Shown here piece after piece: positions 5,692 through 25,844 of a DNA stretch of 64,000 nt. The stretch spans positions 16,368,001-16,432,000 of the forward strand of contig NW_026262615.1 in NCBI RefSeq assembly GCF_021869535.1. The letters run 5' to 3'. Under the pieces are notes generated by a model. That model made no database searches. It was not told the origin of the DNA and worked only from the letters and a program-made list of their open reading frames with translations. A program made the position numbers and the translations under genes. The stretch is from Mytilus californianus (lineage: Eukaryota). Every line of letters begins with the position of its first letter. The stretch's first letter is position 1.

Positions 5692-8586
5692 CAAATAAAA
5701 TGCTTCGCTGGGGCGCAGCTTGATACGACCGCAGAGGTCGAACCCTGAACAGTTGGGGCAAGTATGGACACAACATTCAAGCTTGATACAGCTCTGAATT
5801 TGGATTGTTATTAAATATTTGACACAGCATAGGTTTCTGACACAGAAAGAATGTGGTCTAAGAACTTGAATTTTTTTAATTTACCTATTATGGTCCAATG
5901 TCCAAAATCAAAATACATGGTTAGATTCAGCATATCAAAGAACCCCATATATTCAATTTTTGTTAAAATCAAACAAAGTTTAATTTTGGACCCCAACTTG
6001 GACAAACTTGAAAACTGGGCCCATAATCAAAAATCTAAACACATGTTTAGATTCAGCATATCAAAGAACCCCAAGAATTCAATTTTTGCTAAAATCAAAC
6101 TAAGTTTAATTTTGGACCCTTTGGACCTTAATGTAGACCAATTTAAAAAACGGGACTTAAAATTAAAAATCTAAATACACGGTTAGATTTGGAATATCAA
6201 AGAACCCCAATAATTCAATTTTTGATGAAATCAAACAAAGTTTAATTTTGGACCCTTTTGACCTCAATATGAACCAATTTGATAGCGGGGCCCACAAATA
6301 AAAAATCTAAATTCATGGTTAGATTCAGCATATCAAAGAACCCCATATATTCAATTTTTGTTGAAATCAAAAAAAGTTTAATTTTGGACCCCAACTTGGA
6401 CCAACTTGAAAACTGGGCCCATAATCAAAAATCTAAACACATGTTTAGATTCAGCATATCAAAGAACCCCAAGAATTCAATTTTTGTTAAAATCAAACTA
6501 AGTTTAATTTTGGACCCTTTGGACCTCAATGAAGACCAATTTAAAAAACGGGACCCAAATTAAAAATCTAAAAACACGGTTAGATTTGGCATATCAAAGA
6601 ACCCCAATAATTCAATTTTCGATGAAATCAAACAAAGTTTAATTTTGGACCCTTTTGACCTCAATATGAACCAATTTGATAGCGGGGCCTACAAATAAAA
6701 AATCTAAATACATGGTTAGATTCAGCATATCAAAGAACCCCATATATTCAATTTTTGTTGAAATCAAACAAAGTTTAATTTTGGACCCCAATTTGGACCA
6801 ACTTGAAAACTGGGCCCATAATCAAAAATCTAAATACATGTTTAGATTCAGCATATCAAAGAACCCCATATATTCAATTTTTGTTGAAATCAAACAAAGT
6901 TTAAATACTGGACCCTATCTTGGACCAACTTGAAAACTGGGCCCATAATCAAAAATCTAAACACATGTTTAGATTCAGCAAATCAAAGAACCCAAAGAAT
7001 TCAATTTTTGTCAAAATCAAACTTAAGTTTAATTTTGGACCCTTTGGACCTCAATGTAGACCAATTTAAAAAACAGGACCCAAAATTAAAAACCTAAATA
7101 CACGGTAAGATTTGGAATATCAAAGAACCCCAATAATTCAATTTTAGATGAAATCAAACAAAGTTTAATTTTGGACCCTTTTGACCTCAATATGAACCAA
7201 TTAGATAACGGGGTCCACAAATAAAAAATCTAAATACATGGTTAGATTCAGCATATCAAAGAACCCCATATATTCAATTTTTGTTGAAATCAAACAAAGT
7301 TTAATTTTGGACCCCAATTTGGACCAACTTGAAAACTGGGCCAAAAATCAAAAATCTAAATACATGTTTAGATTCAGCATATCAAAGAACCTCATATATT
7401 CAATTTTTGCTAAAATCAAACAAAGTTTAATTTTGGACCCTTTGGACATTAATGTAGACCAATTTGAAAACTGGACCCAAAATTAAAAATCTAAATACAC
7501 TGTTAGATTCGGCATAACAAATAAATAAATGTGATCAAAGATTTTACAAATCTAATGCGCCATACTGTGCAATTAAAGATTACTTCTTGAAATTTTTCAA
7601 TATTTGAAATTTGAAAAAAAAATAATATTTGAAGAATAATTCTTTTTAATTTCTGAAATCTGAAATGAGAAAAAATTGGCCCCCCACAATTTCTTTTTAT
7701 CCCCCCCCCCTTTTTCCCCCAAAAAAATTCTTTCCCTCAAGATATGGTCATAATCTCAATTCCAATTTCCAATGGAGTTGGCAACCATAATTACCCATTA
7801 AAATTTACCATAGTGCTAACTTAATCTATTTTATAATAGAATTAATAAAAATATAGTGTCAAATCTTTCATATGGATTTTTTTGTAAAAAAAAAGATGAA
7901 AACATTTGCAGATATTTTTACTGGTCTTCCTTTATAAATATGCATTTCTTTAAACATAATTTAAAAGCAGTGTAAGGGAAGTAACCAAAACGTTGTATTT
8001 TGATTACCTCCCTTACACTGTTTTAGATTATCTTTATTGTTCATTAACCATTACTTTATACATAATTTAAAAGCAGTGTAAGGGAGATAATTTCAATGAT
8101 GTATTTGATTTATCTCCCTTACACTGCTTTAAATTATGTTTTGTACTAAAGTATTTGTCCATTAACCAGGACAACCTTGTTTTTCCCCCTTTTTTGCCCC
8201 TAATTCCTAAACGGTTTGAGCCATAACCCCCCAAAGCAAATCCTAACCATCCCTTTGTGGTATGGAAACTTGTAGTATAATTTCAGAGAGATCCATACAC
8301 CGTTCCACAGTTATTGTCTGGAAACTAGAAAATGCTCATTTTTGGCCCCTTTTTGGCCCCTTATTCCTTAACTGTTGGTACCATAACCCCCAAAATCAAT
8401 CCCAACCTTCCTTTTGTGGTATTTAACCTTATGGTCAAATTTCAAAAAGATCCATTCACTTAAACTAAAGTTAGAGTGCGAAAACCAATATGTATATATA
8501 TATATACGCCGGACGACGACGACGACGAAGACGACGCCAACGTCATACCAATATACGACCACAAAATTTTTTTGCGGTCGTATAAA
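5692..8586 (+). mobile_element. HINE-like element B nested in element A, carrying a satellite array
   Basis: Interrupts A at aataataacaaa|...|aaaaactgcaaaatttt (compare the uninterrupted unit at ~5185). 5' subTIR gatacgaccgc (~5723). 3' (gac)n plus hairpin tatacgaccacaaaa...tttgcggtcgtata at ~8550-8584. Confidence 0.75.
5900..7520. repeat. Tandem satellite, 12 monomers of 126-137 bp with a ~398-bp three-monomer higher-order period
   Basis: The anchor atcaaagaac occurs at 5934, 6060, 6196, 6332, 6458, 6593, 6729, 6855, 6982, 7119, 7255, 7381 (spacings 126,136,136,126,135,136,126,127,137,136,126). Confidence 0.9.
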
Positions 8587-10678
8587 AACTGCAAAATTTT
8601 GTTAAAACTACCAATTCGGTGGCAGCAACCCAACAATGGGTTGTTCGATTCGTCTGAAAATTTCAGAGCTGATAGATCTTGACCAATTGAACAATTTTAT
8701 CCCATGTCAGATTTGCTCTAAAAGCTTTAGTTTTTGTGATATAAGCCAAAAACTGCATTTGACCCCTATGTTCTATTTTTAGCCATGGCGGCCATGTTTG
8801 TCGATGGATCAAAACTTTAAATACAATTTATAAACTAGATACCCTAAGGAACATTTAGTTAAAGTTTGAAGGTATTTGACCCCGTAGTTTCAGAGGAGAA
8901 GATTTTTTGTATAGTTTACGACGACAGACAACAACGACGACGGATGCCAAGTGATGGCATTAGCTCACATGGGGCCCTTCGGGCCCCTGTGAGCTAAAAA
9001 GGAAGAAAATATCAATAGTCAAACATCAAAGTCAAAGAAAAACCAACAATTCATGTTTTCCATGGGAAAATATCAAAAAACAATGAAAAGACAAACAACA
9101 GTCTACAAAACACTACATGGAAAACTAAAGACTGAGCAACATGATCCCCATTTTTTAATTTTCTTGTACCAGTGAACTATTTTGGAGGTACATGTAGAGT
9201 TATATCCCTTAGACATTCAGATTTTTTTCACTTATGCAGTATCTGTAAATAATTCACATTTTCTTCTTTTCTTGAATTTTTCTTGACTACATTGCTGTAA
9301 TTGAGTTTTTAATTGTCTGTCATTGATAGCTGTCTATGCGGTATGGCTTTTGCTCATTGTTGAAGGCTGTTCATGTACGTTGACCTATAGTTGTTAGCTT
9401 CAATGTCATTTGGTATCTGGTGGAGAGTTATTTCATTGGCAATCATACCACATCTTCTCATTTTATATTTACTATTCATAAAAGTATAATTTCAAGGTCA
9501 ATCAAAATCTCATTGGTGCATTTTCTGAAAAATACTGCAATTTACTATTCTCCAGGGAGCAATTAATATTTGAAGGCCCTGCACAGTTACTTAACATCTG
9601 TGTGCAGTAGATTTCTTAGTTATAAAAATATTTGTATACCAGGAAAAAAATTATGACATGTTTTGGTCTACCAAAACTTGAGATTTAAAGGGTTGTTAAA
9701 AAAATTTACTTGTATTTTTGGAGAAGATTAAGAGGAGATTATTCAAATCTTCAAATAAAAATTAAAAACTTACAACTGAACTAAATCCATATTCAGGACG
9801 AGAACATGATAATGTGTTCGATATGAATATAAACCTGCTTTGAACTAGACCTACACACTGAGCTTGGTCTCACTAATTAGTAACAAGAAGCATCAGGAAG
9901 TGACAAGAAGCGTAAAGGAGCGACAAGAAGAATAATTTAGCGACAAAAAGACTTAATTTAGCGCCAAGAAATCTTAATAGAAATCATGGTAATTAAAGGT
10001 GTTTTTTTTTTTATATAAATGTGTTTTCACTACTTACATGCATGTAGTTAAAAATCATAAGGTTATGAATGTTTGAATTTGTGTTGGATGGGTTTGTGTT
10101 TATGGGTTATTTCTTCATTCTTAAATTTTGTTAAGCTATTTTTCTCAATTCTTTATGGACAATTGGTATAAACAGATGATTGAAGGATTAGCTCCTCATG
10201 TATGCTTGTATATTAAGAGTAATTGCCATGTGCTTTTATTTACATAATTTAATTACCAATTAACTCCCTGTTGTGACATGATAATGATTCTGGGATTGTT
10301 GCAAAATGTTCAGATTGATACATACTTTAAAATGTTTTTTTTTTTTTCACTAAAAATTCATAATATAACTGTAGTGCTACTGAATAAAATAAATTTGTAA
10401 CTTTATTAAACAACAAAAAATCAGCTGGAATGAATTCACTTTTTCTATTAATTGATTGTTTTTATAGTGTTTAAACTTTCTTGTCACTAAATTTGTCTTC
10501 TTGTCGCTAATTTTTTCTTCTTGTCACAAATTTTTTTCTTCTATTTTTCTCTTAAGGCCAACTAAAATTAATTAGTAGATTTTCATCCAAATTTTTTTTT
10601 AAAATGGGGCGGGTGGGATGATTTTATTATTTTATTTTTATTTCCTCCAAACCCTTTTGTGACGTGTTCTTCATATGC

Positions 10679-15390: not shown

Positions 15391-15519
15391 GAGGGACTGA
15401 CCGTGAATTTTCGGGTTAGATATACATATGAAAAAGGGGGGATCAGCCGACGAAAGTTTCGATCTTGATAACATTGAATAAGGGAAAAATTAAAAGATAG
15501 TCTGTCTATTCAGGACATC

Positions 15520-15830
15520 AAAGTGCAAAAATTTCTACAGATACATTGGCGAAAAAGTTACATATCAAGGACAACAAAGTAAGCTGCCGTGAAAAATTTC
15601 TCTGACAGATACATTGACAAAAAAGCTACATATTTAAAACAACAAAGTGCAGAAATTTCTGCAGATACATTGGCGAAAAAGATACATATTCAAAACAACA
15701 AAGTGCAAAAATTTCTACAGATACATTGGCGAAAAAGAAAGATATTCATGTCAACAAAATGCAAAATTTTTTTACAGATACATTGGCGAAAAAGATACAT
15801 TTTCAGGACAACAAAGCAAACGTTTCTGCA
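15520..15830. repeat. ~56-bp minisatellite, 5 copies
   Basis: Unit caaagtgcaaaaatttctacagatacattggcgaaaaag...; the anchor cagatacattg recurs at a ~56-bp period. Confidence 0.85.
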
Positions 15831-16302
15831 CTTAATTACGGTCGATCGCCATCACAGGTCTAGGACCTACCTGATAAATTTTGTTAGTTTGTTCTCCGCC
15901 TAAACATACTTGAAATATATGCCACTGTATCTGCATCTGTAACTGTATCGAGATAAATTCTACCAATGTAGGCACACCTCCAATGGAGTTGAATATATAT
16001 AATATCCTTCACCACACAATATAATAATACGCAATGAATGTCTAATCCAATTATGAATACATAGTAATATATCAATAAAAATGACTTCTGTACCGCCACC
16101 ATTATGTACAATTAATATATGATTTGACAATAAAAAGATAAAATTTATATTTAATTTTAATCTGTATGCACCCATATAATAACCAAATTTATTATTGGTT
16201 GATAACCGTCTATTTGATTCGATTACAACTGATGATACCTGTGGAGATTCCCACCCTGATCATCAGCTTAATGTCATATATAGTTTACATTATATTTACT
16301 CC

Positions 16303-19300
16303 TCATGAAAGGTTGTTTTTCTTTTCACATTTTTGTTGTTTGGTTAGCAGTTCATACCGCTTCATATGCAGATTGTTAATAAGCTGTCTACACACACTCT
16401 AGTTGTCCAGTAATATTTTGAACAATTTCATTGTTACGTTTATCCACAGTATAGTAGAAAGGATTAACTATTAGCTGAACTAAGTCTACTTCCTCTACAA
16501 AGCAAGATTTTGGTAAAAGTTCACTCCCCATATCAATTATTATCTTCATCAGTCTTTTCCTGTCGGTTTCAAGTGACTCACATGTTAGTAAAAAATGTGA
16601 CAAGATTTCAGGACTCTTATTACAAAGTTTACATGTTGGACTGACTTTGTTTTTATTGAATGATGCTCGATTCGATTGAAATATATATGTTCCTGTAGCA
16701 ATTTTGGTTCTTGTATGAATCCTTACAATGTCTCTATTGTTGGCTGTTTTTGTAGTGATCAATGGGTGTATTTTCCCAATAGAATATTGACAATTTATAT
16801 ACCGAAGAGTTGAGTTCATCTTTGAGTCATCAAGAATTTTATTGGTCCAGTAGCTTTGCACTTTATTGTTTATAAAGGATTTCCATTTGTTTTTTGTTAG
16901 TGGATTGTCCAGAAAGTTTTCTATATTTTCTATATTATATAACAAACAGAGTTTTTTAATATCAATGAACCAACTGTTACTATTGAAAGATTTTAATTTA
17001 AGCTGCCTTTCCGCTATTCTCCACACATTTGAAGTTTTTTTCTGATCTCGTGATGGTCCAAAATAATGTCAAAATTTTGATATTTAACTCAGCTTCAATA
17101 GGTATCATGCCAGAGAGTATATAAATGGCTGGGTCTGCTGTATTTGTAGATAATGATAGTAGCTGTTTTAATAATTTCTTGTGGTATAGATTAAGAGTTG
17201 TTAGAGATTTTCCTTTTGGGATCAAAATTTCTAGTCCATAAGTAAGAATAGGTAGTACAAAAGTTTTAACTAGTGAGATAATTGTTTCTGGGTCCAAACC
17301 GTTGGTTCCATGAAGACCTGATCCCATTAAACTATATAAAGTGCGTCTTGCTTTTTTGATGTTTTCTTCAACTGTTAACTGGACTGAGTTTTTTTCTGAT
17401 TTATGTATTCCAATGTGTGTTGCTGTTTTAACTACTGGCATTGGCTTATCATCCATATTCCAAAATCCTTCTCCAGTTTCTATTGTTTTTGAGGTTGTTC
17501 TTACTGGCAGTATTACACTTTTAGTAGGTTGTAATAAGTATCCTTCTCTTCGACTGAAGTCAACTGCAATATCAACCATGGACTGTATCTCCAGTGGATT
17601 TGTTGCTATAATAGCGACATCATCAGCGCAGGTAGGTACACAACAGTTTATGTTACCAATTTTTCCGCCGAGTCCTGTTTCACACAAGAGGTTCAATAAA
17701 GGGTTGACATATACTTTATACAAGTCAGCAGATATAGCTCCACCTTGACGTACTCCTTGTTCTACTAAGAAAGGTTCCGAAAGGTGACCATTTCATTTAA
17801 TACATGTAGCAGCATTTTGGTAAAGATTTTGTATCATTAGTAGAGATTGATCAGATATTCCAATTTGGAAGAGTCTTCTAATGAGGTTTGCATGTACTAC
17901 TACATCAAAGGTTGACTTCCCATCAAGCAGTGCTATGTAAGTTGGTCTTTTTAGGTCTTTATTTTCTCTCTCAAACTCCTCTATGATGAGTTCACACATA
18001 CGTGGGGTGGTATCCTCTGTGAATCCACTTTGTAACGGGTTTTGAGATTCGATAATTTTTATATTTTCTCTTAGTTTCAAGATCTTTTCTATTATTTTCG
18101 ATAAGGTTGGAGTGACAGTAATTCCACGGTAGTTAGTAGCATCTTTAATATTGCCTTTGTTTTTAAATATTGGAAATAATGTGCCAATTTTGAGTAGGTC
18201 TGGAACATAACAGTATTTAAATGACATATTTATTAGTTCACGTATATAAGCTTTCAGATCTTCACCACCATATATAATATTTTCTGCTGTGATTCCATAA
18301 ATGTCTGCTGCTTTGTTTTTGTTCAAACTTGATATTGCTTTTTCTACTTCTTCATCAGTCACTTGCATATGAATATATCTATTTTGACAAATATCAGATA
18401 TAACTTTAACTTCTTTTTCAACATTTTCCAAATGTTTATGATCGAACTTTGTATTGACAGACTTTTTAGCTAGTTCTCCAAAATGTATATGCCAGCCGTT
18501 AATAATTTGGTTGTCACTGTTATAGATTTGATTATCAACATTGAGCTAATCTATATGTTTTGACATTTTTCCTCTTTGATTTCTAATCATTCTAAAAAAC
18601 GTTTTGGTATCTGTGACTTTAGAATCAATTAGTTTTTGCCTCTCATTTATTCTTCTAATTGCTATTTCTAAGCGACATTGCTTCCTCAGTTCGTAAGTTG
18701 TTAGCTTCTTTTGTTTCAGGTAGTAGTTGTGTGGATCATTAATGCTTCCGTTACTTTTCAAATTATAGAACGCTATTTTCTTGTTACTGATAGCTTTACG
18801 AATTTCCTCATTCATCACTTGTAATTTTGGCTTCTTTTTTCCTTTTTTTGATTTAGGAGCAATATCTTTTGTAGCTTTAATTATGATGTTATTTAAAGTG
18901 TTGAATCCGCTGTCAAGGTCTTCACGATTTTGTATTTTACATTTTGTTGAGCTAATTTCTGTAGAGATGAGGCGTGCATATTTTCCTGTATCAATTTTGT
19001 CCCATTTTATTCTTGTGTTAAATGTTTTTGCAGATGTTTGAGAGTTTTTAATAATATTGAGCTTTTTCTGAAGATGTAAAACAGACAATAACAGAGGATA
19101 GTGGTCCGAAACATTTGAAGTTACATTTAGTTTCTGTATATCTATTATGTTCTCTGAATATTTATTTTGATAAAGAATAAAGTCAATGGCAGTGGCATCT
19201 TTTCCATTTGAATGTATAAAGGTAAGTCCAGTTTCTTTTGAAGATAGCTCATGGTCTTGCATAAAGTCATTGATATATTTCTTTCTATGAGAGGAAGCAC

Positions 19301-19784
19301 CATTAATTATGTCTTCATTAAAGTCTCCTCCTATAATTATCTGATGAGTATTGGAGTATGTACATACAATCTCATTCAGTTGGTCTATACATTCTAGTAG
19401 CTCTTGTGTACTGTTAGTGGGTCCTTTGCATGGTAGATATAAGAAAACAATGATGATGTTAGGATCTCCTTCTATTTCAATGCATTGAATTCTACTATTT
19501 CCTGCTTTCAAAGTCGAAATTAAGGGGTCTAGTTCTTTTCGCCACAATATTGCCACCCCACCGTATCCTCTCGGCATTTGTATTGGAGGCAGAGGGTCAT
19601 CAGTGTCAACCGGCCTTCCTATTCCTATATATTTAGAGTCAATTTCATTCAACATGTTGAGTTGACAATCAAACAACCAATGTTCCTGAAGTAAATAAAT
19701 ATCTACATCTTCCTTCATCTCTCTGAAGAATGGACCACAAGACTTAGTTAAAATATTTTTACAGTTAAAACTCAAAACTTTCAT
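16303..19784 (-). pseudogene. ORF2: apurinic-like (EEP) endonuclease plus reverse transcriptase, disrupted
   Basis: EEP motifs MKVLSFNCKN, LLQEHW, GYGGVAILW, GGDFNED, SDHYP (18546-19784). RT motifs NYRGITV, LQSGF, ALLDGKSTFDVV, PTCADDVAI (16998-18431). C-terminal CKLC...HFLLTC (16388-17026). In-frame stops at 18546 (TAG) and 17793 (TGA), and frameshifts near 17.0 and 16.4 kb. Confidence 0.92.
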
Positions 19785-19861
19785 ATTCTTCTGCTCACAA
19801 TCATTAAAATCTAAAACGTTATTTGTACAGTTACTATTTACATATGTACGTGGATTGTCAT

Positions 19862-21853
19862 CTAGTGCGGTGTCTGGTTGAGGCTTGGATGGTATAAAAA
19901 ATGATCTGTATAACTTGTAGGTTGGTAGTACAATGGTTGTCCTATTTTTCTATACTGATTATCTATTGTTTGCTGATCGATATGCCTCGAGTGGTATGTA
20001 TTCTGATCATTAGTTCTTAAAAGTTGTGTTGTATTGTTTTGAATAGATATGTGGTTTTGGACCTTTTCTTTGTTTGTCCAATTTGGAACAACTTCTATAA
20101 AGTTATCCTTGCAGATGTTTCGGGTCTCTAGTTTTGTTTGATATGAGTATTGACTAGATATTTCTCTTTTATCATGATTCTGATACTTCCTATCTTCATT
20201 TTCTGATCGGTACCAGTATTGATTGGGTTCACTGAACTGCGCTCCATACATACTGTACTGATTAGTTGCTGGTGGTTCACCATAGTTTTGGTTATAGCTG
20301 CTATCTCTATAGTACAGTTGTTGGTTTGAAGGATACATTTGCTTGTAATCATATGATGTTTGATTTTGTCTATTGAGAGTATCATTGTTGGTATTTTTAT
20401 TTTCATTTTGAAGTTTATTTATTTCATCATCAACTTTACTAAGTACATATTTTGTCACTTTTTCTCGTATACCAATCACAAGGTCATCAGTTGCAGTGCT
20501 AGTCGTATTTTGGTGTTCAGGAGGATGTTGATTTTGCCTCTTCTGAAAAGACTCTATTTTGGTGTACAGAGTTTTAATTGTATTTTCCAGTTCTAAATTT
20601 CGAAATTCTGCTTTATGTAATCTATCTAAGATGTTTGTTTTTTCCTTCATATTTTCATTAATCATGGCTTCTTTCATTTTTAATTGTTCTTCTCTTTTTT
20701 CAACTTTTGTTCTAATTGTTTTAATTCCTTCATATGAATTTTGTGATTTTCATCTTAACTTGTTTTTATCAGCTGTAACAGTATATGTAGAACCATCAGT
20801 GATCAGATGTGAAGTATTCGGAGATTCAGGTTGTGTCTTTTGGCGTATTTCATCACTTTGTGCAGTACCGACAGTAGCTCTAAATTCAGGTTGAATATAT
20901 TTTGTAGTTGTTTCAAGAGAAATGTTAACTGGTCCTGATTCATTAATGTAAGTTGTCTCTATTTCTACAGATTTTGGTATTGTTTCATGTGTTTGTTGTT
21001 GGGTTTTGTCACTGAGGTCTCTCTGTTCAGCTAACCCTATGCACGAGTTTCATTTTTGAGTATCATTATCTAGACAATTGTCATGAAATGGCATGTCACA
21101 TATTAAGCATCTGTTTTCAACACTTTGTTCAAAAATTATTGCAGGCATTACATTGAATTTCTTCTTGTAAAATCATGTCAGCTACTGACAATTCTGGATT
21201 ATTAATAGCACAGTCATTATGTAATATTGCTAACTATACAAAGTTGTTTCTTGTATCAAACTCTTCATTTATGCAAATTTTACACACATAGATATGTACA
21301 CTTTGTTCTATTTCTTCAATTTCGTTTTCAGCTAGTTTGTCACATTTATAATGGACCCAGTTTTAAGTTTTATTGCCAGATTTTGATTTAACATTTCTAT
21401 ATTAATTTTTGCTCCATTTATCTGTGTGTTACTCATAATTTTGTAAATTTCTTGAGCATGTTGATGTATGAATTGATGAGCATCTTTTCCATTTATCAGT
21501 AGTGTACATTTTGTTACATATTAAGCATTGATTGTGAAGCTCAAGTTTGTCGAGTCAGTGATTTGATAGGTATATTGTACCTTTTTTGCCGGTTTTGTCC
21601 TTGGCAGTTGTTTTATTACATGTATCAAAGTATGTTTCACATGCATATATGAATAGTTCAAAGGATACTGTATCCAGTTGAGCAGTGATACCCCCGCCTG
21701 TATATGAATATTCAATCTCAGATCTCTGTGTAGTCTCAAATTTTTTCTTTAAAGATTTTTCGATATTTAACACATATCTGTTCTCATAAGTTTTTCCAAT
21801 ATAAAGCTTGCTGTCACTTTTTGAATGTTTAATGGTTTTTTAACTAAAGCCAT
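19862..21853 (-). pseudogene. ORF1: gag-like protein with PHD-finger remnants, coiled coil and Q/N/Y-rich C-terminus, disrupted
   Basis: Likely ATG at 21853 (caagATGgct). Fragments YTGGGITAQLD, YVTKCTLLINGKD, WVHYKCDKL...YVCKIC (PHD second half) and RCLICDMPFHDNC. Coiled-coil segment in ORF 19862-20677. Confidence 0.7.
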
Positions 21854-21951
21854 CTTGTATAATTATAAAATTTTCTAGTATTGAAATTGTCTATAAGACC
21901 AGCGATACCTGTGAAGATTCCCACCCTGATCGCTAGTACCTATATGTCAAT

Positions 21952-22669
21952 TTACCAACAGTCAAATATTGCCTGTTTTGTGATCTTACGTAGCCACACT
22001 CTTGCTAGGTTCGTGTCTGGATGTATTCCGTCACGGTACAAGTTAAAGTTATACTGATCAGATGCCTTACGTTAATTGTCTGATTTTTTTTGTTTATTTT
22101 ATGATAGATATCTGAGGCGAAATTTGGTGTAATTGATCTAAGTGTCCTGTTGAGGTTGCCAATATGCTCATTGATTTCTGTGTATTGTTTTAGAAGTTTG
22201 ATGTCTTGTTCTATAAATTGCTTTAGCTCTGATGTTGTTTATATTTATTCCAAGCCTATGGTGGGAGTTGTAAGAAGGTGAGTTTACAACCTGGATAGTT
22301 TCTAAAAAGTTCAATAATATGTTGATAGTTATCAGTAAGTGTTTTGATTGTGTCTTGTTCCTCAGACCTTAATGATATGTATTTTCCGTCATAGGATGTA
22401 ATGTCGCACGTCCCTAACCATATATAGAGAGATATATTGTCAAGCTGACCAATCTTGGAGTCTAGATTGCTATGTAACCATTCAAGTCCTTGTGTTGAGG
22501 TACGTCCAGACCTGAACCACCACTTGATTGTGTTTTCTGTGGGGATAGTACAATGTTTGCTGACCCAGTATCCCTTACTGTCAGTAAGAACAACCGGAGG
22601 TAATAGGCGTTGACCAGGAGGTGGTACAATAGGTTCACGCAAAAACTTCAACAATTTATATTCTGTCAT
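21952..22669 (-). pseudogene. SGNH/GDSL-type esterase ORF (one frameshift near 22255)
   Basis: Block I VVLTDSKG, block III YIWLGTCDIT and, after the frameshift, block V YRDGIHP (22018-22032), ending FDCW* (TAA at 21952-21954). Confidence 0.8.
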
Positions 22670-23559
22670 GAGTTGTATTATGCAATCAAAAGTTATTATA
22701 TAGGTTATATTCAAAAGCGTGCAAGAGTATACACATGTACGGGTAAGGCAAAGCTATCTACTGGTTATATAAGCAGGCTGGATATATGTAGAAGGCAGAC
22801 AGTACAGGTTATATACTCAAAGCTCTATTGACTGGTAAAAGTCGGTTATGATTTAAAAAAAATGTCATTCACTTTTGTTGGAAGACAATATATGATATCT
22901 GCAGACTATATATTTACAGTCATGAATTGATAAAAATGTTTTATTCGGTAAAACAATAACACAAGATTTTCACCTCCTGAATAACGTAGAAAGTTCACTG
23001 TAATTTATAAAAATTGGATACTATTAAAACTCTAATTCAGGGAATGATTATTGATGGGTGCATACAGACTATCTAAAAAAAATTAAGAAATGACCGCCAT
23101 GACATGCGGATTATGGATGGGCTCGCAACTGACGGATTGGTTTTAGTGTTTATATATCAAATAAGACGCATAAAAAGTTTATAAAAGTATTCCGCCAGTG
23201 TTAGGTGTAATAAAGGGATGTATTTGCAATGTTCCTGTCACAATATATCTTCTAAAATATCAAATTCAATGAAAATTTTCCTCTCCCAAATTCAATGAAA
23301 ATTTTCTTCTCCCAAATTCAAACCACCACCATTTATTCGAGCATGCGCACATCAAAAAAATGAACGTTAATCAAGCAACAATCTCAGTATCATTCAATCA
23401 AATGCCCAGTTTCAGGATAAATATGTTACAAACTGTCTTGACATATAGATAAGTGTAATCGAAGATCCATTATCTGATGAGTTGAAACATGGTATATACG
23501 TATATAGGCCCTAAAAAATCAGAGACAAGTTCATGTAAGTTCTACTACTAATCAATCAG

Positions 23560-24460
23560 AGCTTTTAACTACTTCCTTAACTACTATCAAAAAACTTATC
23601 ATTAACTTTTGTAATAAAACATATGAAAATAGTGGAATTAAGTATTTATTTAGTGTAAAAAATTCTTTGGATGTTTTAGATAAATTACGCGCTTTTGATG
23701 GTCCTTCTGATTCGGTTGCCGTCAGTTTTGACTTTCCACTCTTTATACTACATTACCACACAATCTTATCAAACAAAAGAGTTGCTTTTTAATCAAATGG
23801 ACGTTTGAAAAATCTGATTGCAAATTGCTTTGCTGCAACTCATATAAAGCCTTTTTCCTGAAAAAAAGGTAAATATGCTAGATATGTACCTACTTGAGGT
23901 AATGAGATGATTAAAGCTGCAAATTTTCTCCTTGACAACATTTATTTACGTTTCGGCAGTAAAGTTTATTGACAGGTTGTAGTTATTCCTATGGAAACCA
24001 ATTGCGCCCCTTTAATAGCTGACTAGTTCCTATACTAACATGAATCACGGTGTATGGCCAAACTGAGTAACGACCCCGGCGTCTAAATTCCATTTAATTG
24101 ATAAATTCAACAACAGTTACCACTATCTTGATGATATTTTTTCGTTAAATAATCAAGAATTCTCTAAATATACTGCCAAAATTTACCCAAAGGAACTTAC
24201 TTTATATATTAATACCTTTACTAAATCATACTAGATACAACGATTTGGTTTGCAAGTTTGGATGTACCTGTAGAAAACATATTTCAAACGGAATAGCACA
24301 TTCTAATGTTTACCGAGCCCGAAAATTTAGTTGATCCGGGTAAACTTATAAATCATTTAAATAAACTTATTCTGAAAGGTTACCAATTCAAAACTGCAAT
24401 TAGATCCTTGAATATGGTTTTTATTGGTATTCATATTGATTATCTTTTCAGTAAATTTAA
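23560..24460 (+). mobile_element. Penelope-like element (Naiad/Chlamys-type) reverse transcriptase relic
   Basis: Degenerate translation NFLLDNIYLRFGSKVY*QVVVIPMETNCAPLIAD*FLY...FNNSYHYLDDIFSLNN...IYPKELTL matches the PLE RT motifs PMGTNCAP..ADLFL / RY.DD. Confidence 0.8.
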
Positions 24461-25844
24461 ACCATACTAAATATTATTGTTATACACACATGCACATTCA
24501 CGATAACCATATTTTGGCATTGCGCACGTCATGTTTTTCTTTAACTGTTAATGACGTCTTTGCACTAATTCCATTGGATGTTTGATGTGTACTGATTGAT
24601 ATTTTTGTCTTAGATATATGATTTTTTATAGTTATTATTGGCTTTGAACTAGCTGTCAGTAACTGCGAGTACTCCCAGATCTGTACTTGGGTCTCCTTTT
24701 TTGTTTTTATGGATGTATAAATACCCTGCCCCGTCCTGTCTTTGTTTTTGTTAGATGTTTTTCTGCTTTATATCGATCTGAGGAGTTTAAAGCCCTTTTT
24801 CACTGATTGTTATAGTTTGTTCTTATGTTTTACTATTACACCACTTTCCCCGGTTAGGAGGAGGGTTGGCGCCTTCAAACATGTTTAACCCGACACATTT
24901 TATATGTGCCTGTCCCAAATCAGGAGCCTGTAGTTCAGTGGTTGTCGTTGGTTCATGTCTGTAATATTTCATTTTTGTTTTTCGTAAATGGCTTTTTTTA
25001 TAAATAAGTTCATTTAGTTTTCTTAATTGAATTATTTTATATTTTTCATGTCGGGGCCTTTATAACCGACTATACGGTAGAGGTTTTTCCTCCTTGGTGA
25101 AGGCTGTACGGTTGCCTATACTTGCTTACATTGCTTCATTTGAACTTTGGTGGATAGCTGTCTCATTGTTTATCATACCACATCTCCTTATTTTCATATA
25201 AATAAGTTAAAACAGGGAGAAATACAATTTGTTTCGACGAATAAAACGTCTGCTACAATAACATGAACTAAAAAATGAGTACGTCCGAAACGCTTTTTTG
25301 GATTTAATCATCATCATTTTGCTTACAACAAACTAACATTGGAAAGCCAAGGGTGTATAAAGACTTGAAATCCTGAGGAGATATATGAATAACCAAAATC
25401 TACCTAAGGTCAATTGAAACCTTAGTTTCATTTAGTAATTCCAAATTTATCAACAGAAAATGCATCAGAAAAGTATGTTAAAAATCATTAGTAGCATAAA
25501 TTCCAATGGTTTATAAAATACTACCAGGTACGTCCGGAAAACTATTAACTGATCTTCAACACCATCTCAATAAAATATCGTATGTATCTTGGATGCTATC
25601 GAATAAGGATATTGTTTTAACAACTTTTAAACCTCCAAAACACCAACGGACGTCAAGCTATAATTACAGGTCATCATACGGCCTTCAACAACAAGCAAAT
25701 CATTTACCGTATAATAAGCTATAAACAGCCCTGGATAAAAAAGAATTGGAACAGTTTACTAAAGAAAAACCATAGGCCTTTTTTAAGCTAGTGATATAAA
25801 ACTAAAACAAAAAAAAACAAAAAAAAAACAATTATGGCAGATAG

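Follow-up and report, generated by a model that had tools for sequence, protein, structure and literature searches.

This work concerns a 64,000-nucleotide stretch of the genome of the mussel Mytilus californianus (contig NW_026262615.1, positions 16,368,001 to 16,432,000; the whole of it is called the window here) and a 7.4-kb mobile element that lies on its minus strand. The element is an apurinic/apyrimidinic endonuclease (APE)-type retrotransposon of the kind without long terminal repeats (LTRs), that is, a long interspersed nuclear element (LINE) of Mytilus, and in it an SGNH esterase occupies an open reading frame (ORF) of its own, ahead of an ORF1 with PHD-like fingers and an ORF2 with domains for APE and for a reverse transcriptase (RT). 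We consider it very probable that this is a tricistronic LINE: its copies are collinear, they have a common 5' terminus, a truncated copy reads through the junction between esterase and ORF1, and intact copies keep the esterase in a separate ORF. An original prediction, made from the letters of the window alone, had offered this reading beside another, in which an esterase-only satellite travels with the LINE; the first has held up and the second has not.

Why should the placement of one small gene matter? LINE biology rests on models with one or two ORFs, and work on transposon esterases has dealt with them solely as a domain of ORF1p. A three-ORF LINE separates the esterase from the multimerising, chromatin-reading ORF1, which makes the role of the esterase testable alone, and it poses a question of its own: how are three cistrons expressed from one eukaryotic RNA? 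It also brings forward an accessory gene that, in bivalves, LINEs have in common with LTR elements, both of them abundant in bivalve genomes. There is a practical side for annotation as well: these ORFs are joined or mislabelled in Mytilus gene models, and LINE contigs, presumably of the host, turn up in genome bins of bivalve symbionts.

A word search with the 412-residue APE piece of the window copy led to proteins of Mytilus coruscus, M. galloprovincialis and M. edulis at 83-95% identity, and six Mytilus loci behind those matches (L001-L006) were fetched and compared with the window, which makes seven copies in the sample of this family. Four are full length (the window, L002, L003 and L005), and in each the esterase, ORF1 and ORF2 are collinear; in L002 a 5.9-kb foreign insertion interrupts ORF1, and the module order is still kept. 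All four start with an identical TGTGCGCATGC..., at about 23351 in the window, amid unrelated flanks. The other three are truncated at the 5' end, at positions corresponding to 22152 (L004), 21690 (L001) and 19351 (L006) of the window; L004 begins within the esterase and runs through the spacer into ORF1. A 3' region with a hairpin and a tail is common to all copies, and the 3' limit, compared in six of them, falls at about 15925 in the window, past a run of GATACAG-like hexamers. There are no LTRs, and variable 5' truncation with a common 3' end is a LINE-like pattern. Full-length copies with one 5' end, together with this truncation, mean that the modules move as one: the three ORFs are a single retrotransposition unit.

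Between the modules of the window copy we found no A-tail, simple-repeat tail, target-site duplication or independent boundary, as had been predicted for poly-A tails and duplications; at the outer junctions of the window copy, L003 and L005, no clear target-site duplication could be made out by eye. Collinearity, the pattern of truncation and the absence of any element end between the modules exclude a chance juxtaposition and strongly disfavour a satellite.

The window copy itself is dead, with all three ORFs broken; its ORFs were read by three-frame translation and searched piece by piece. The element, a degenerate pseudocopy whose boundaries come from copy comparison, spans 15925-23351 and is 97.2% identical to L005 across 7316 nt. 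Its 5' untranslated region (UTR; 22670-23351, about 680 nt) has no long ORF; a 26-nt tandem duplication at 23261-23321 within it is missing from L005. The esterase ORF (21952-22669) survives in pieces at 22669-22259, about 22229-22101 and 22071-21955: a stop codon interrupts its frame at 22258-22256, and the frame shifts near 22232 and again near 22090. Its DSKG and GTCD motifs lie in the first piece, DGIHP lies in the last, and the natural stop codon is at 21954-21952. A 98-nt spacer (21854-21951) separates it from ORF1 (19862-21853), which runs from an ATG at 21853 to a stop at 19864-19862. Several stops break it, and half of the first finger has been lost through a deletion of 148 nt at 21362/21361; its terminal 271-295 codons (20749-19865) remain open. 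ORF2 (16388-19784) starts with an ATG at 19784 and comprises APE (19784-18549), RT (18545-17001) and a C-terminal region with a zf-RVT-like motif (17068-16391); two stop codons, at 18548-18546 and at 17795-17793, interrupt it, and near 17040 its frame shifts. A tail of hexamer units without poly-A (15925-15949) closes the element.

Much of this had been foreseen. The three esterase motifs and the stop at 21952, a spacer of roughly 100 nt, an ORF1 from ATG 21853 with PHD remnants and an APE-RT ORF after it, all on one strand, were found as described. The esterase ORF is indeed free-standing, with a stop of its own and a spacer behind it, but it is not, in this copy, the single open frame that it had been taken for. 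Likewise, the element had been rightly located, but its limits (16140-22850) were drawn too narrowly at both ends.

Less damaged copies make up for the state of the window. L005 has an intact esterase ORF of 242 residues (6923-7651), and L003 an open frame of at least 237 residues (7567-8280) that lacks the ATG used by L005. Both stop at the same codon, after ...AIFDCW, and in both ORF1 follows 98 nt further on, in a different frame.

What is this first protein? A word-index protein search with an esterase piece of the window returned no match, and we therefore chose an exhaustive search, which, with a piece of 137 residues, gave 373 clusters at E<=1e-3. Among the 150 best clusters, 54 are proteins of 230-262 residues that start with M and have common terminal motifs: MSE.KL.K...SDSKG at the N-terminus, and at the C-terminus DGIHP...DC[WY], followed by at most a few residues. 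The family thus consists of stand-alone proteins of about 240 residues that begin some 25 residues ahead of block I, and the esterase is a separate ORF conserved over deep divergence. Across an alignment of 52 sequences, with identity down to 26%, S31, D217, G218, H220 and P221 are invariant, which supplies the serine of block I and the Asp-x-x-His of block V; the block II glycine (G55) is at least 90% conserved, and the G-T-C motif of block III is nearly so fixed as to be invariant.

Profile methods see little of this. Pfam found nothing in the three window pieces and matched Lipase_GDSL, weakly, in 9 of the 52 members (best E=1.3e-4); phmmer of the esterase piece against PDB gave chance matches only, and a scan of viral contigs turned up no relative. 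Structure says more. An AlphaFold model built on the 52-sequence alignment is confident (pLDDT 95.1, pTM 0.90) and complete at the C-terminus, and the top 50 Foldseek matches in PDB are almost all hydrolases of the GDSL/SGNH family or related acyl-esterases, the best of them including 4iyj, 3p94, 4hf7 and sialate O-acetylesterases, with E down to 7.6e-7 and TM, normalised by target length, up to 0.70. The invariant residues, the confident model and the PDB matches together indicate that the first ORF has, as modelled, an SGNH fold with its Ser, Asp and His residues.

ORF1, aligned from six relatives and the pieces of the window family, has four parts: a conserved N-terminal domain (...YT.N.Y.T.C..LVNGK...), two C4HC3-like (PHD-like) fingers, a coiled coil and a low-complexity tail. 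In the window the finger remnants lie at 21362-21237 and 21172-21053, and the tail is rich in Q, N and Y. Pfam recognises PHD in three related elements, L034 (3.4e-4), L037 (2.9e-6) and L045 (3.4e-7), and a model of moderate quality for the N-terminal part of ORF1 from L007, a vent-metagenome contig, weakly matches the PHD fingers of Pygo and DPF; a fold search with the N-terminal domain gave no structural match. For ORF2, Pfam finds Exo_endo_phos_2 (the APE, E=1e-10 in the window), Exo_endo_phos and RVT_1 (the RT), both among the pieces of the window copy and among intact relatives, where APE and RT share one ORF. The element has traits of the CR1/L2 group, namely a 3' UTR hairpin, a short-repeat tail without poly-A and an ORF1 with PHD fingers; names in the source records and PDB matches (R2, L1) do not discriminate among RT clades.

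The layout reaches well beyond Mytilus LINEs of this family. In related families, from assemblies associated with bivalves, all three ORFs can be whole. The 8.7-kb contig L007, the source of one of the 54 proteins above, carries an intact esterase (245 residues), ORF1 (768) and ORF2 (1130, with APE and RT), and L057 has three intact ORFs of 248, 815 and 1138 residues. As an unbiased test, further contigs were picked by ORF2 alone and then inspected upstream: an esterase ORF was present in all three that had enough 5' sequence (L054, L055 and L057), the contig of the fourth, L056, stops short on the 5' side. Scanning with the alignment of esterases added 6 loci in symbiont genome bins and 35 in metagenomes, with partners annotated by tblastn and Pfam. 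For the symbiont-bin loci we infer host contamination, and for most of the metagenomic ones the origin is a presumed one; bins named Sedimenticola, Ca. Thiodubiliella and Ca. Thiodiazotropha hold eukaryotic LINE/LTR contigs (L013-L018; P0018, P0020, P0330 and others), presumably mis-binned DNA of the bivalve hosts.

In these loci the esterase ORF comes first, and the partner behind it is of one of four kinds. The first is the LINE type of the window (L019, L020, L022, L024, L028, L034, L042). The second, also a LINE, has an ORF1 that is shorter and PHD/FYVE-like, and its ORF2 measures 940-1015 residues (L014, L027, L036, L038, L041, L044, L047, L049, L050); the third, again a LINE type, has PHD and APE fused within one ORF (L037:1856-4116 and, in part, L045:2793-4464). 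The fourth is no LINE at all: in Ty3/gypsy elements (L015:223-6884, L016:1702-7930, L018:2614-5263, L031:223-6745, L013:2095-3304) the esterase comes first, followed by gag and then protease, RT, RNase H and integrase, and in L016 LTR-like repeats stand on both sides (1-268 matches 8493-8759). In a quick maximum-likelihood tree, 30 intact esterases fall into groups by type of partner, which takes 8 label changes, as opposed to 14.5 with shuffled labels. The M. edulis esterase in L011 groups with those of the PHD-APE fusion LINEs. In three contigs a 2A-like ...IE.NPGP ends a short leader of the PHD ORF just before the finger (L030:~1614, L045:~4039, L051:~1165); such motifs are known from APE-type LINEs (PMC3708506), and the window family is without this leader.

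The spacer deserves attention of its own. In the window, as in L003 and L005, it is 98 nt long, with stops in all three frames, and at 21899-21936 (minus strand) it can form a hairpin with an outer stem AGCGAU/AUCGCU and an apical part GUGGG-AAUC-UUCAC. A second hairpin, in the 3' UTR at 16227-16268 on the same strand, has the same 28-nt core with one mismatch and an outer stem, AGCUGAUGAU/AUCAUCAGUU, that is fully paired. That core, GATCAGGGTGGGAATCT[T/C]CACAGGTATC, occurs twice in the window (21931-21904 and 16261-16234), where none would be expected by chance. Both copies have the same two-tier fold, and their outer stems are unlike yet paired (AGCGAU/AUCGCU vs CUGAUGAU/AUCAUCAG). L007 repeats the arrangement, in that two tandem spacer units and one 3' UTR copy have 34 nt in common and outer stems that are unrelated and paired, and so does L054, with about seven copies in the spacer and two more in the 3' UTR. 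In three LINE families, then, the spacer hairpin is repeated in the 3' UTR. It is not a rule, for the spacer motif is absent from the 3' UTRs of L055 and L057. Further GUGG...CCAC hairpins stand inside the 3' part of ORF1, a few hundred nucleotides before ORF2, in L019 (3263, 3395) and L028 (6464, 6611, 6782).

The upper stem, GUGG/CCAC, hardly varies among 25 instances drawn from six families (a single G-U in 100 pair cells). The lower stem does vary, and its double changes exceed those of shuffled or slid controls (40 cells; none of 500 shuffles reaches the observed value). With the register kept fixed, only 57% of the lower-stem cells pair, since families differ in their register, and RNAalifold recovers only the invariant upper stem; Rfam gave no relevant match for the element or for L007. 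The hairpin may be a signal for translation of the downstream cistrons, a binding site for the proteins of the element or a remnant of the acquisition of a module. Its UGGGA core resembles the reinitiation motif of caliciviruses, which is a lead only.

How might such an element work? In the scheme that we propose, a unit in the order 5' UTR, SGNH esterase ORF of about 240 codons, hairpin spacer, ORF1, ORF2, 3' UTR hairpin and hexamer tail would be transcribed from the common 5' end as a single full-length RNA. The esterase, as the cap-proximal ORF, would be translated through ordinary scanning, and ORF1 and ORF2 would be reached via reinitiation, internal entry or a shorter transcript, with the spacer hairpins as the likeliest cis-signal for these downstream ORFs. 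By analogy with the esterase of ZfL2-1, the protein may act on lipids or membranes during assembly or transport of the ribonucleoprotein, and multimerisation and the reading of chromatin would be left to the ORF1 with its coiled coil and PHD fingers.

Several points weigh against the tricistronic reading, and we do not wish to hide them. Transcript, protein and activity are predicted from the sequence. Two downstream cistrons would have to be translated after a first ORF of 240 codons. Within the window's own family, none of the copies sampled keeps its three ORFs whole. In block III, where the Asn of GxND is expected, at least 90% of the 52 sequences have a Cys (Cys88, in GTCD; the position is set by the motif and not by superposition), and with the Asn so replaced by a conserved Cys, catalysis would not be assured. 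The 52-sequence profile found no PDB chain at E<=1, the ZfL2-1 esterase 4c1b included; 4c1b, whose crystal is a domain-swapped form, was also absent from the top 50 Foldseek matches. Finally, three families have in the spacer a copy of their 3' UTR hairpin, and the esterase module could thus at one time have been the end of an element, joined on later.

Among other explanations, the one that survives best gives the element two transcription units: the spacer would once have been the 5' UTR and promoter of a LINE that then had two ORFs, and would still drive an mRNA for ORF1 and ORF2, while an upstream promoter yields a full-length RNA for the esterase. We regard this as unlikely, though as a serious contender. 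Reinitiation is inefficient after a long first ORF, which counts in its favour, and the spacers of several relatives are tandem arrays (two units of 136 nt in L007, five to seven in L054 and L055, three in L011) that resemble the monomeric 5' UTRs of some LINEs. In the window family, however, the spacer is just 98 nt long and has only one hairpin, not one of the three truncated copies begins there, and the hairpin is found also in 3' UTRs and within ORF1, where a promoter role makes little sense.

Could the esterase and the PHD-bearing ORF1 instead be one protein, made via readthrough, frameshifting or splicing? The annotated Mytilus proteins P0210, P0158 and P0226 would say so, since they link esterase with PHD or ORF1 segments. 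These models, and P0269 with them, join part of the esterase to PHD, ORF1 or APE segments, and they have the look of fusions made across the spacer by gene prediction, not of real ones: parts of the esterase are missing from them, as predicted introns would give. The spacers, moreover, are 98-1153 nt long with 1-32 stops in each frame, the frame of ORF1 varies, the esterase C-terminus ...DC[WY] and the stop behind it are conserved family-wide, and the model of the protein is complete at that end. A fusion of esterase and PHD in one ORF, on which the original prediction said that its reading would fall, is not what intact copies have; they keep separate ORFs. We consider a single protein highly improbable.

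We find it harder still to credit the bipartite system, in which the LINE mobilises a non-autonomous unit that carries the esterase alone and has a 3' hairpin like that of a LINE, and this unit either inserts at the 5' end of the LINE or moves along with it. It is true that the hairpin right after the esterase stop has the 28-nt core of the 3' UTR hairpin, and that two loci, L010 and L011 (the latter beside an assembly gap), have esterase and hairpins without recognisable ORF1 or ORF2. Yet neither tail repeats nor a target-site duplication were found behind the spacer hairpin, all full-length copies begin, upstream of the esterase, at an identical 5' terminus, L004 starts within the esterase and crosses the junction, the esterase tree tracks the lineage of the partner, and the esterase was found in every ORF2-selected element with enough 5' sequence. 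As to the two loci themselves (L010:2437-3500 and L011:10001-11360), they are the only hints of solo esterase units; L010 keeps only a truncated start of ORF1, and L011 runs into the gap. That an esterase fragment and a LINE lie together by chance, at this locus only, which was the other ground on which the original prediction said that its reading would fall, has nothing beyond the window itself to recommend it and is refuted, the same order and spacing recurring in other Mytilus copies (L002, L003, L005, L004) and in distant families (L007-L009, L019, L020, L024, L028, L042, L054, L055, L057).

Beyond the tricistronic reading we would float a broader idea, of which we are far from confident: that the esterase ORF and hairpin spacer form a portable leader cassette, exchanged among bivalve retroelement classes (at least three LINE and several Ty3/gypsy lineages), whose GUGG...CCAC hairpins may serve as a cis-signal for the three cistrons or be recognised by element proteins at the spacer and the 3' end.

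A few features lie outside the element. About 100 nt past its 3' end, 56-nt units are repeated in tandem (about 4-5 copies, window 15507-15817). On the other side, another interspersed repeat occupies 24200-25200 of the window, and parts of it recur in L002 (5032-5298), L003 (17168-18673) and L004 (1029-1207, 14807-16129). A different, second LINE with a PHD ORF1 lies on the minus strand of L001 (14463-21131), tail-to-tail beside the Mytilus coruscus copy.

How does all this compare with what is known? We found no description of a LINE with three ORFs and a stand-alone (ORF0) esterase in the published literature, Repbase entries aside, and the layout goes unmentioned in a 2026 survey of the CR1 group and in a survey of bivalve transposable elements. 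In its 3' end the mussel element resembles the stringent-type LINEs of the CR1/L2 group, with a 3' UTR hairpin, a hexamer-repeat tail and no poly-A; unlike them, it has a second copy of the hairpin, or in relatives a tandem array, between the first and second ORFs, and some families have hairpin copies inside the 3' part of ORF1. Esterase-type ORF1p was reportedly described in CR1, L2 and RTEX LINEs by Kapitonov and Jurka in 2003. In CR1, L2 and RTEX elements, which have two ORFs, the transposon esterase is described as forming the C-terminus of ORF1p behind a coiled coil, and it is found also in some Penelope-like elements (PLEs) (Schneider et al. 2013, PMC3905857). The original prediction, too, gave the esterase of CR1/L2/RTEX LINEs as a domain within ORF1. 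Like ZfL2-1 and its kin, the mussel element is a non-LTR retrotransposon with a predicted SGNH-fold esterase upstream of an APE-RT ORF, with the catalytic Ser and Asp-x-x-His retained and a 3' end without poly-A. Theirs is a domain behind a coiled coil (e.g. residues ~350-540) in an element of two ORFs; the mussel esterase, to which we detected no sequence-level link from 4c1b, stands alone at about 240 residues without a coiled coil, and an ORF1 with PHD and coiled coil comes between it and ORF2.

The mussel ORF1 is itself like the type III, PHD-bearing ORF1 of CR1/L2 elements (Metcalfe & Casane 2014, PMC4120745), with one or more PHD fingers upstream of APE-RT, and Pygo-type PHD is the best structural match here, weakly, as it was there. 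That survey of the Jockey superfamily places esterase ORF1s in two vertebrate subgroups only; it has no report of an element that combines an esterase ORF with a PHD ORF1, nor of a layout with three ORFs. Elsewhere, esterase ORFs that stand free, downstream of pol, are known from the Vesta LTR elements (as ORF3) and Athena PLEs of bdelloid rotifers (PMC5408684), and an SGNH ORF follows the tyrosine recombinase in amphibian Ngaro elements (PMC9210276). As in those elements, the esterase of the mussel LINE is an accessory retroelement gene, with similar ORFs shared between retroelement classes; unlike in those elements, it is the first gene, in bivalves, and in LINEs and Ty3/gypsy elements alike.

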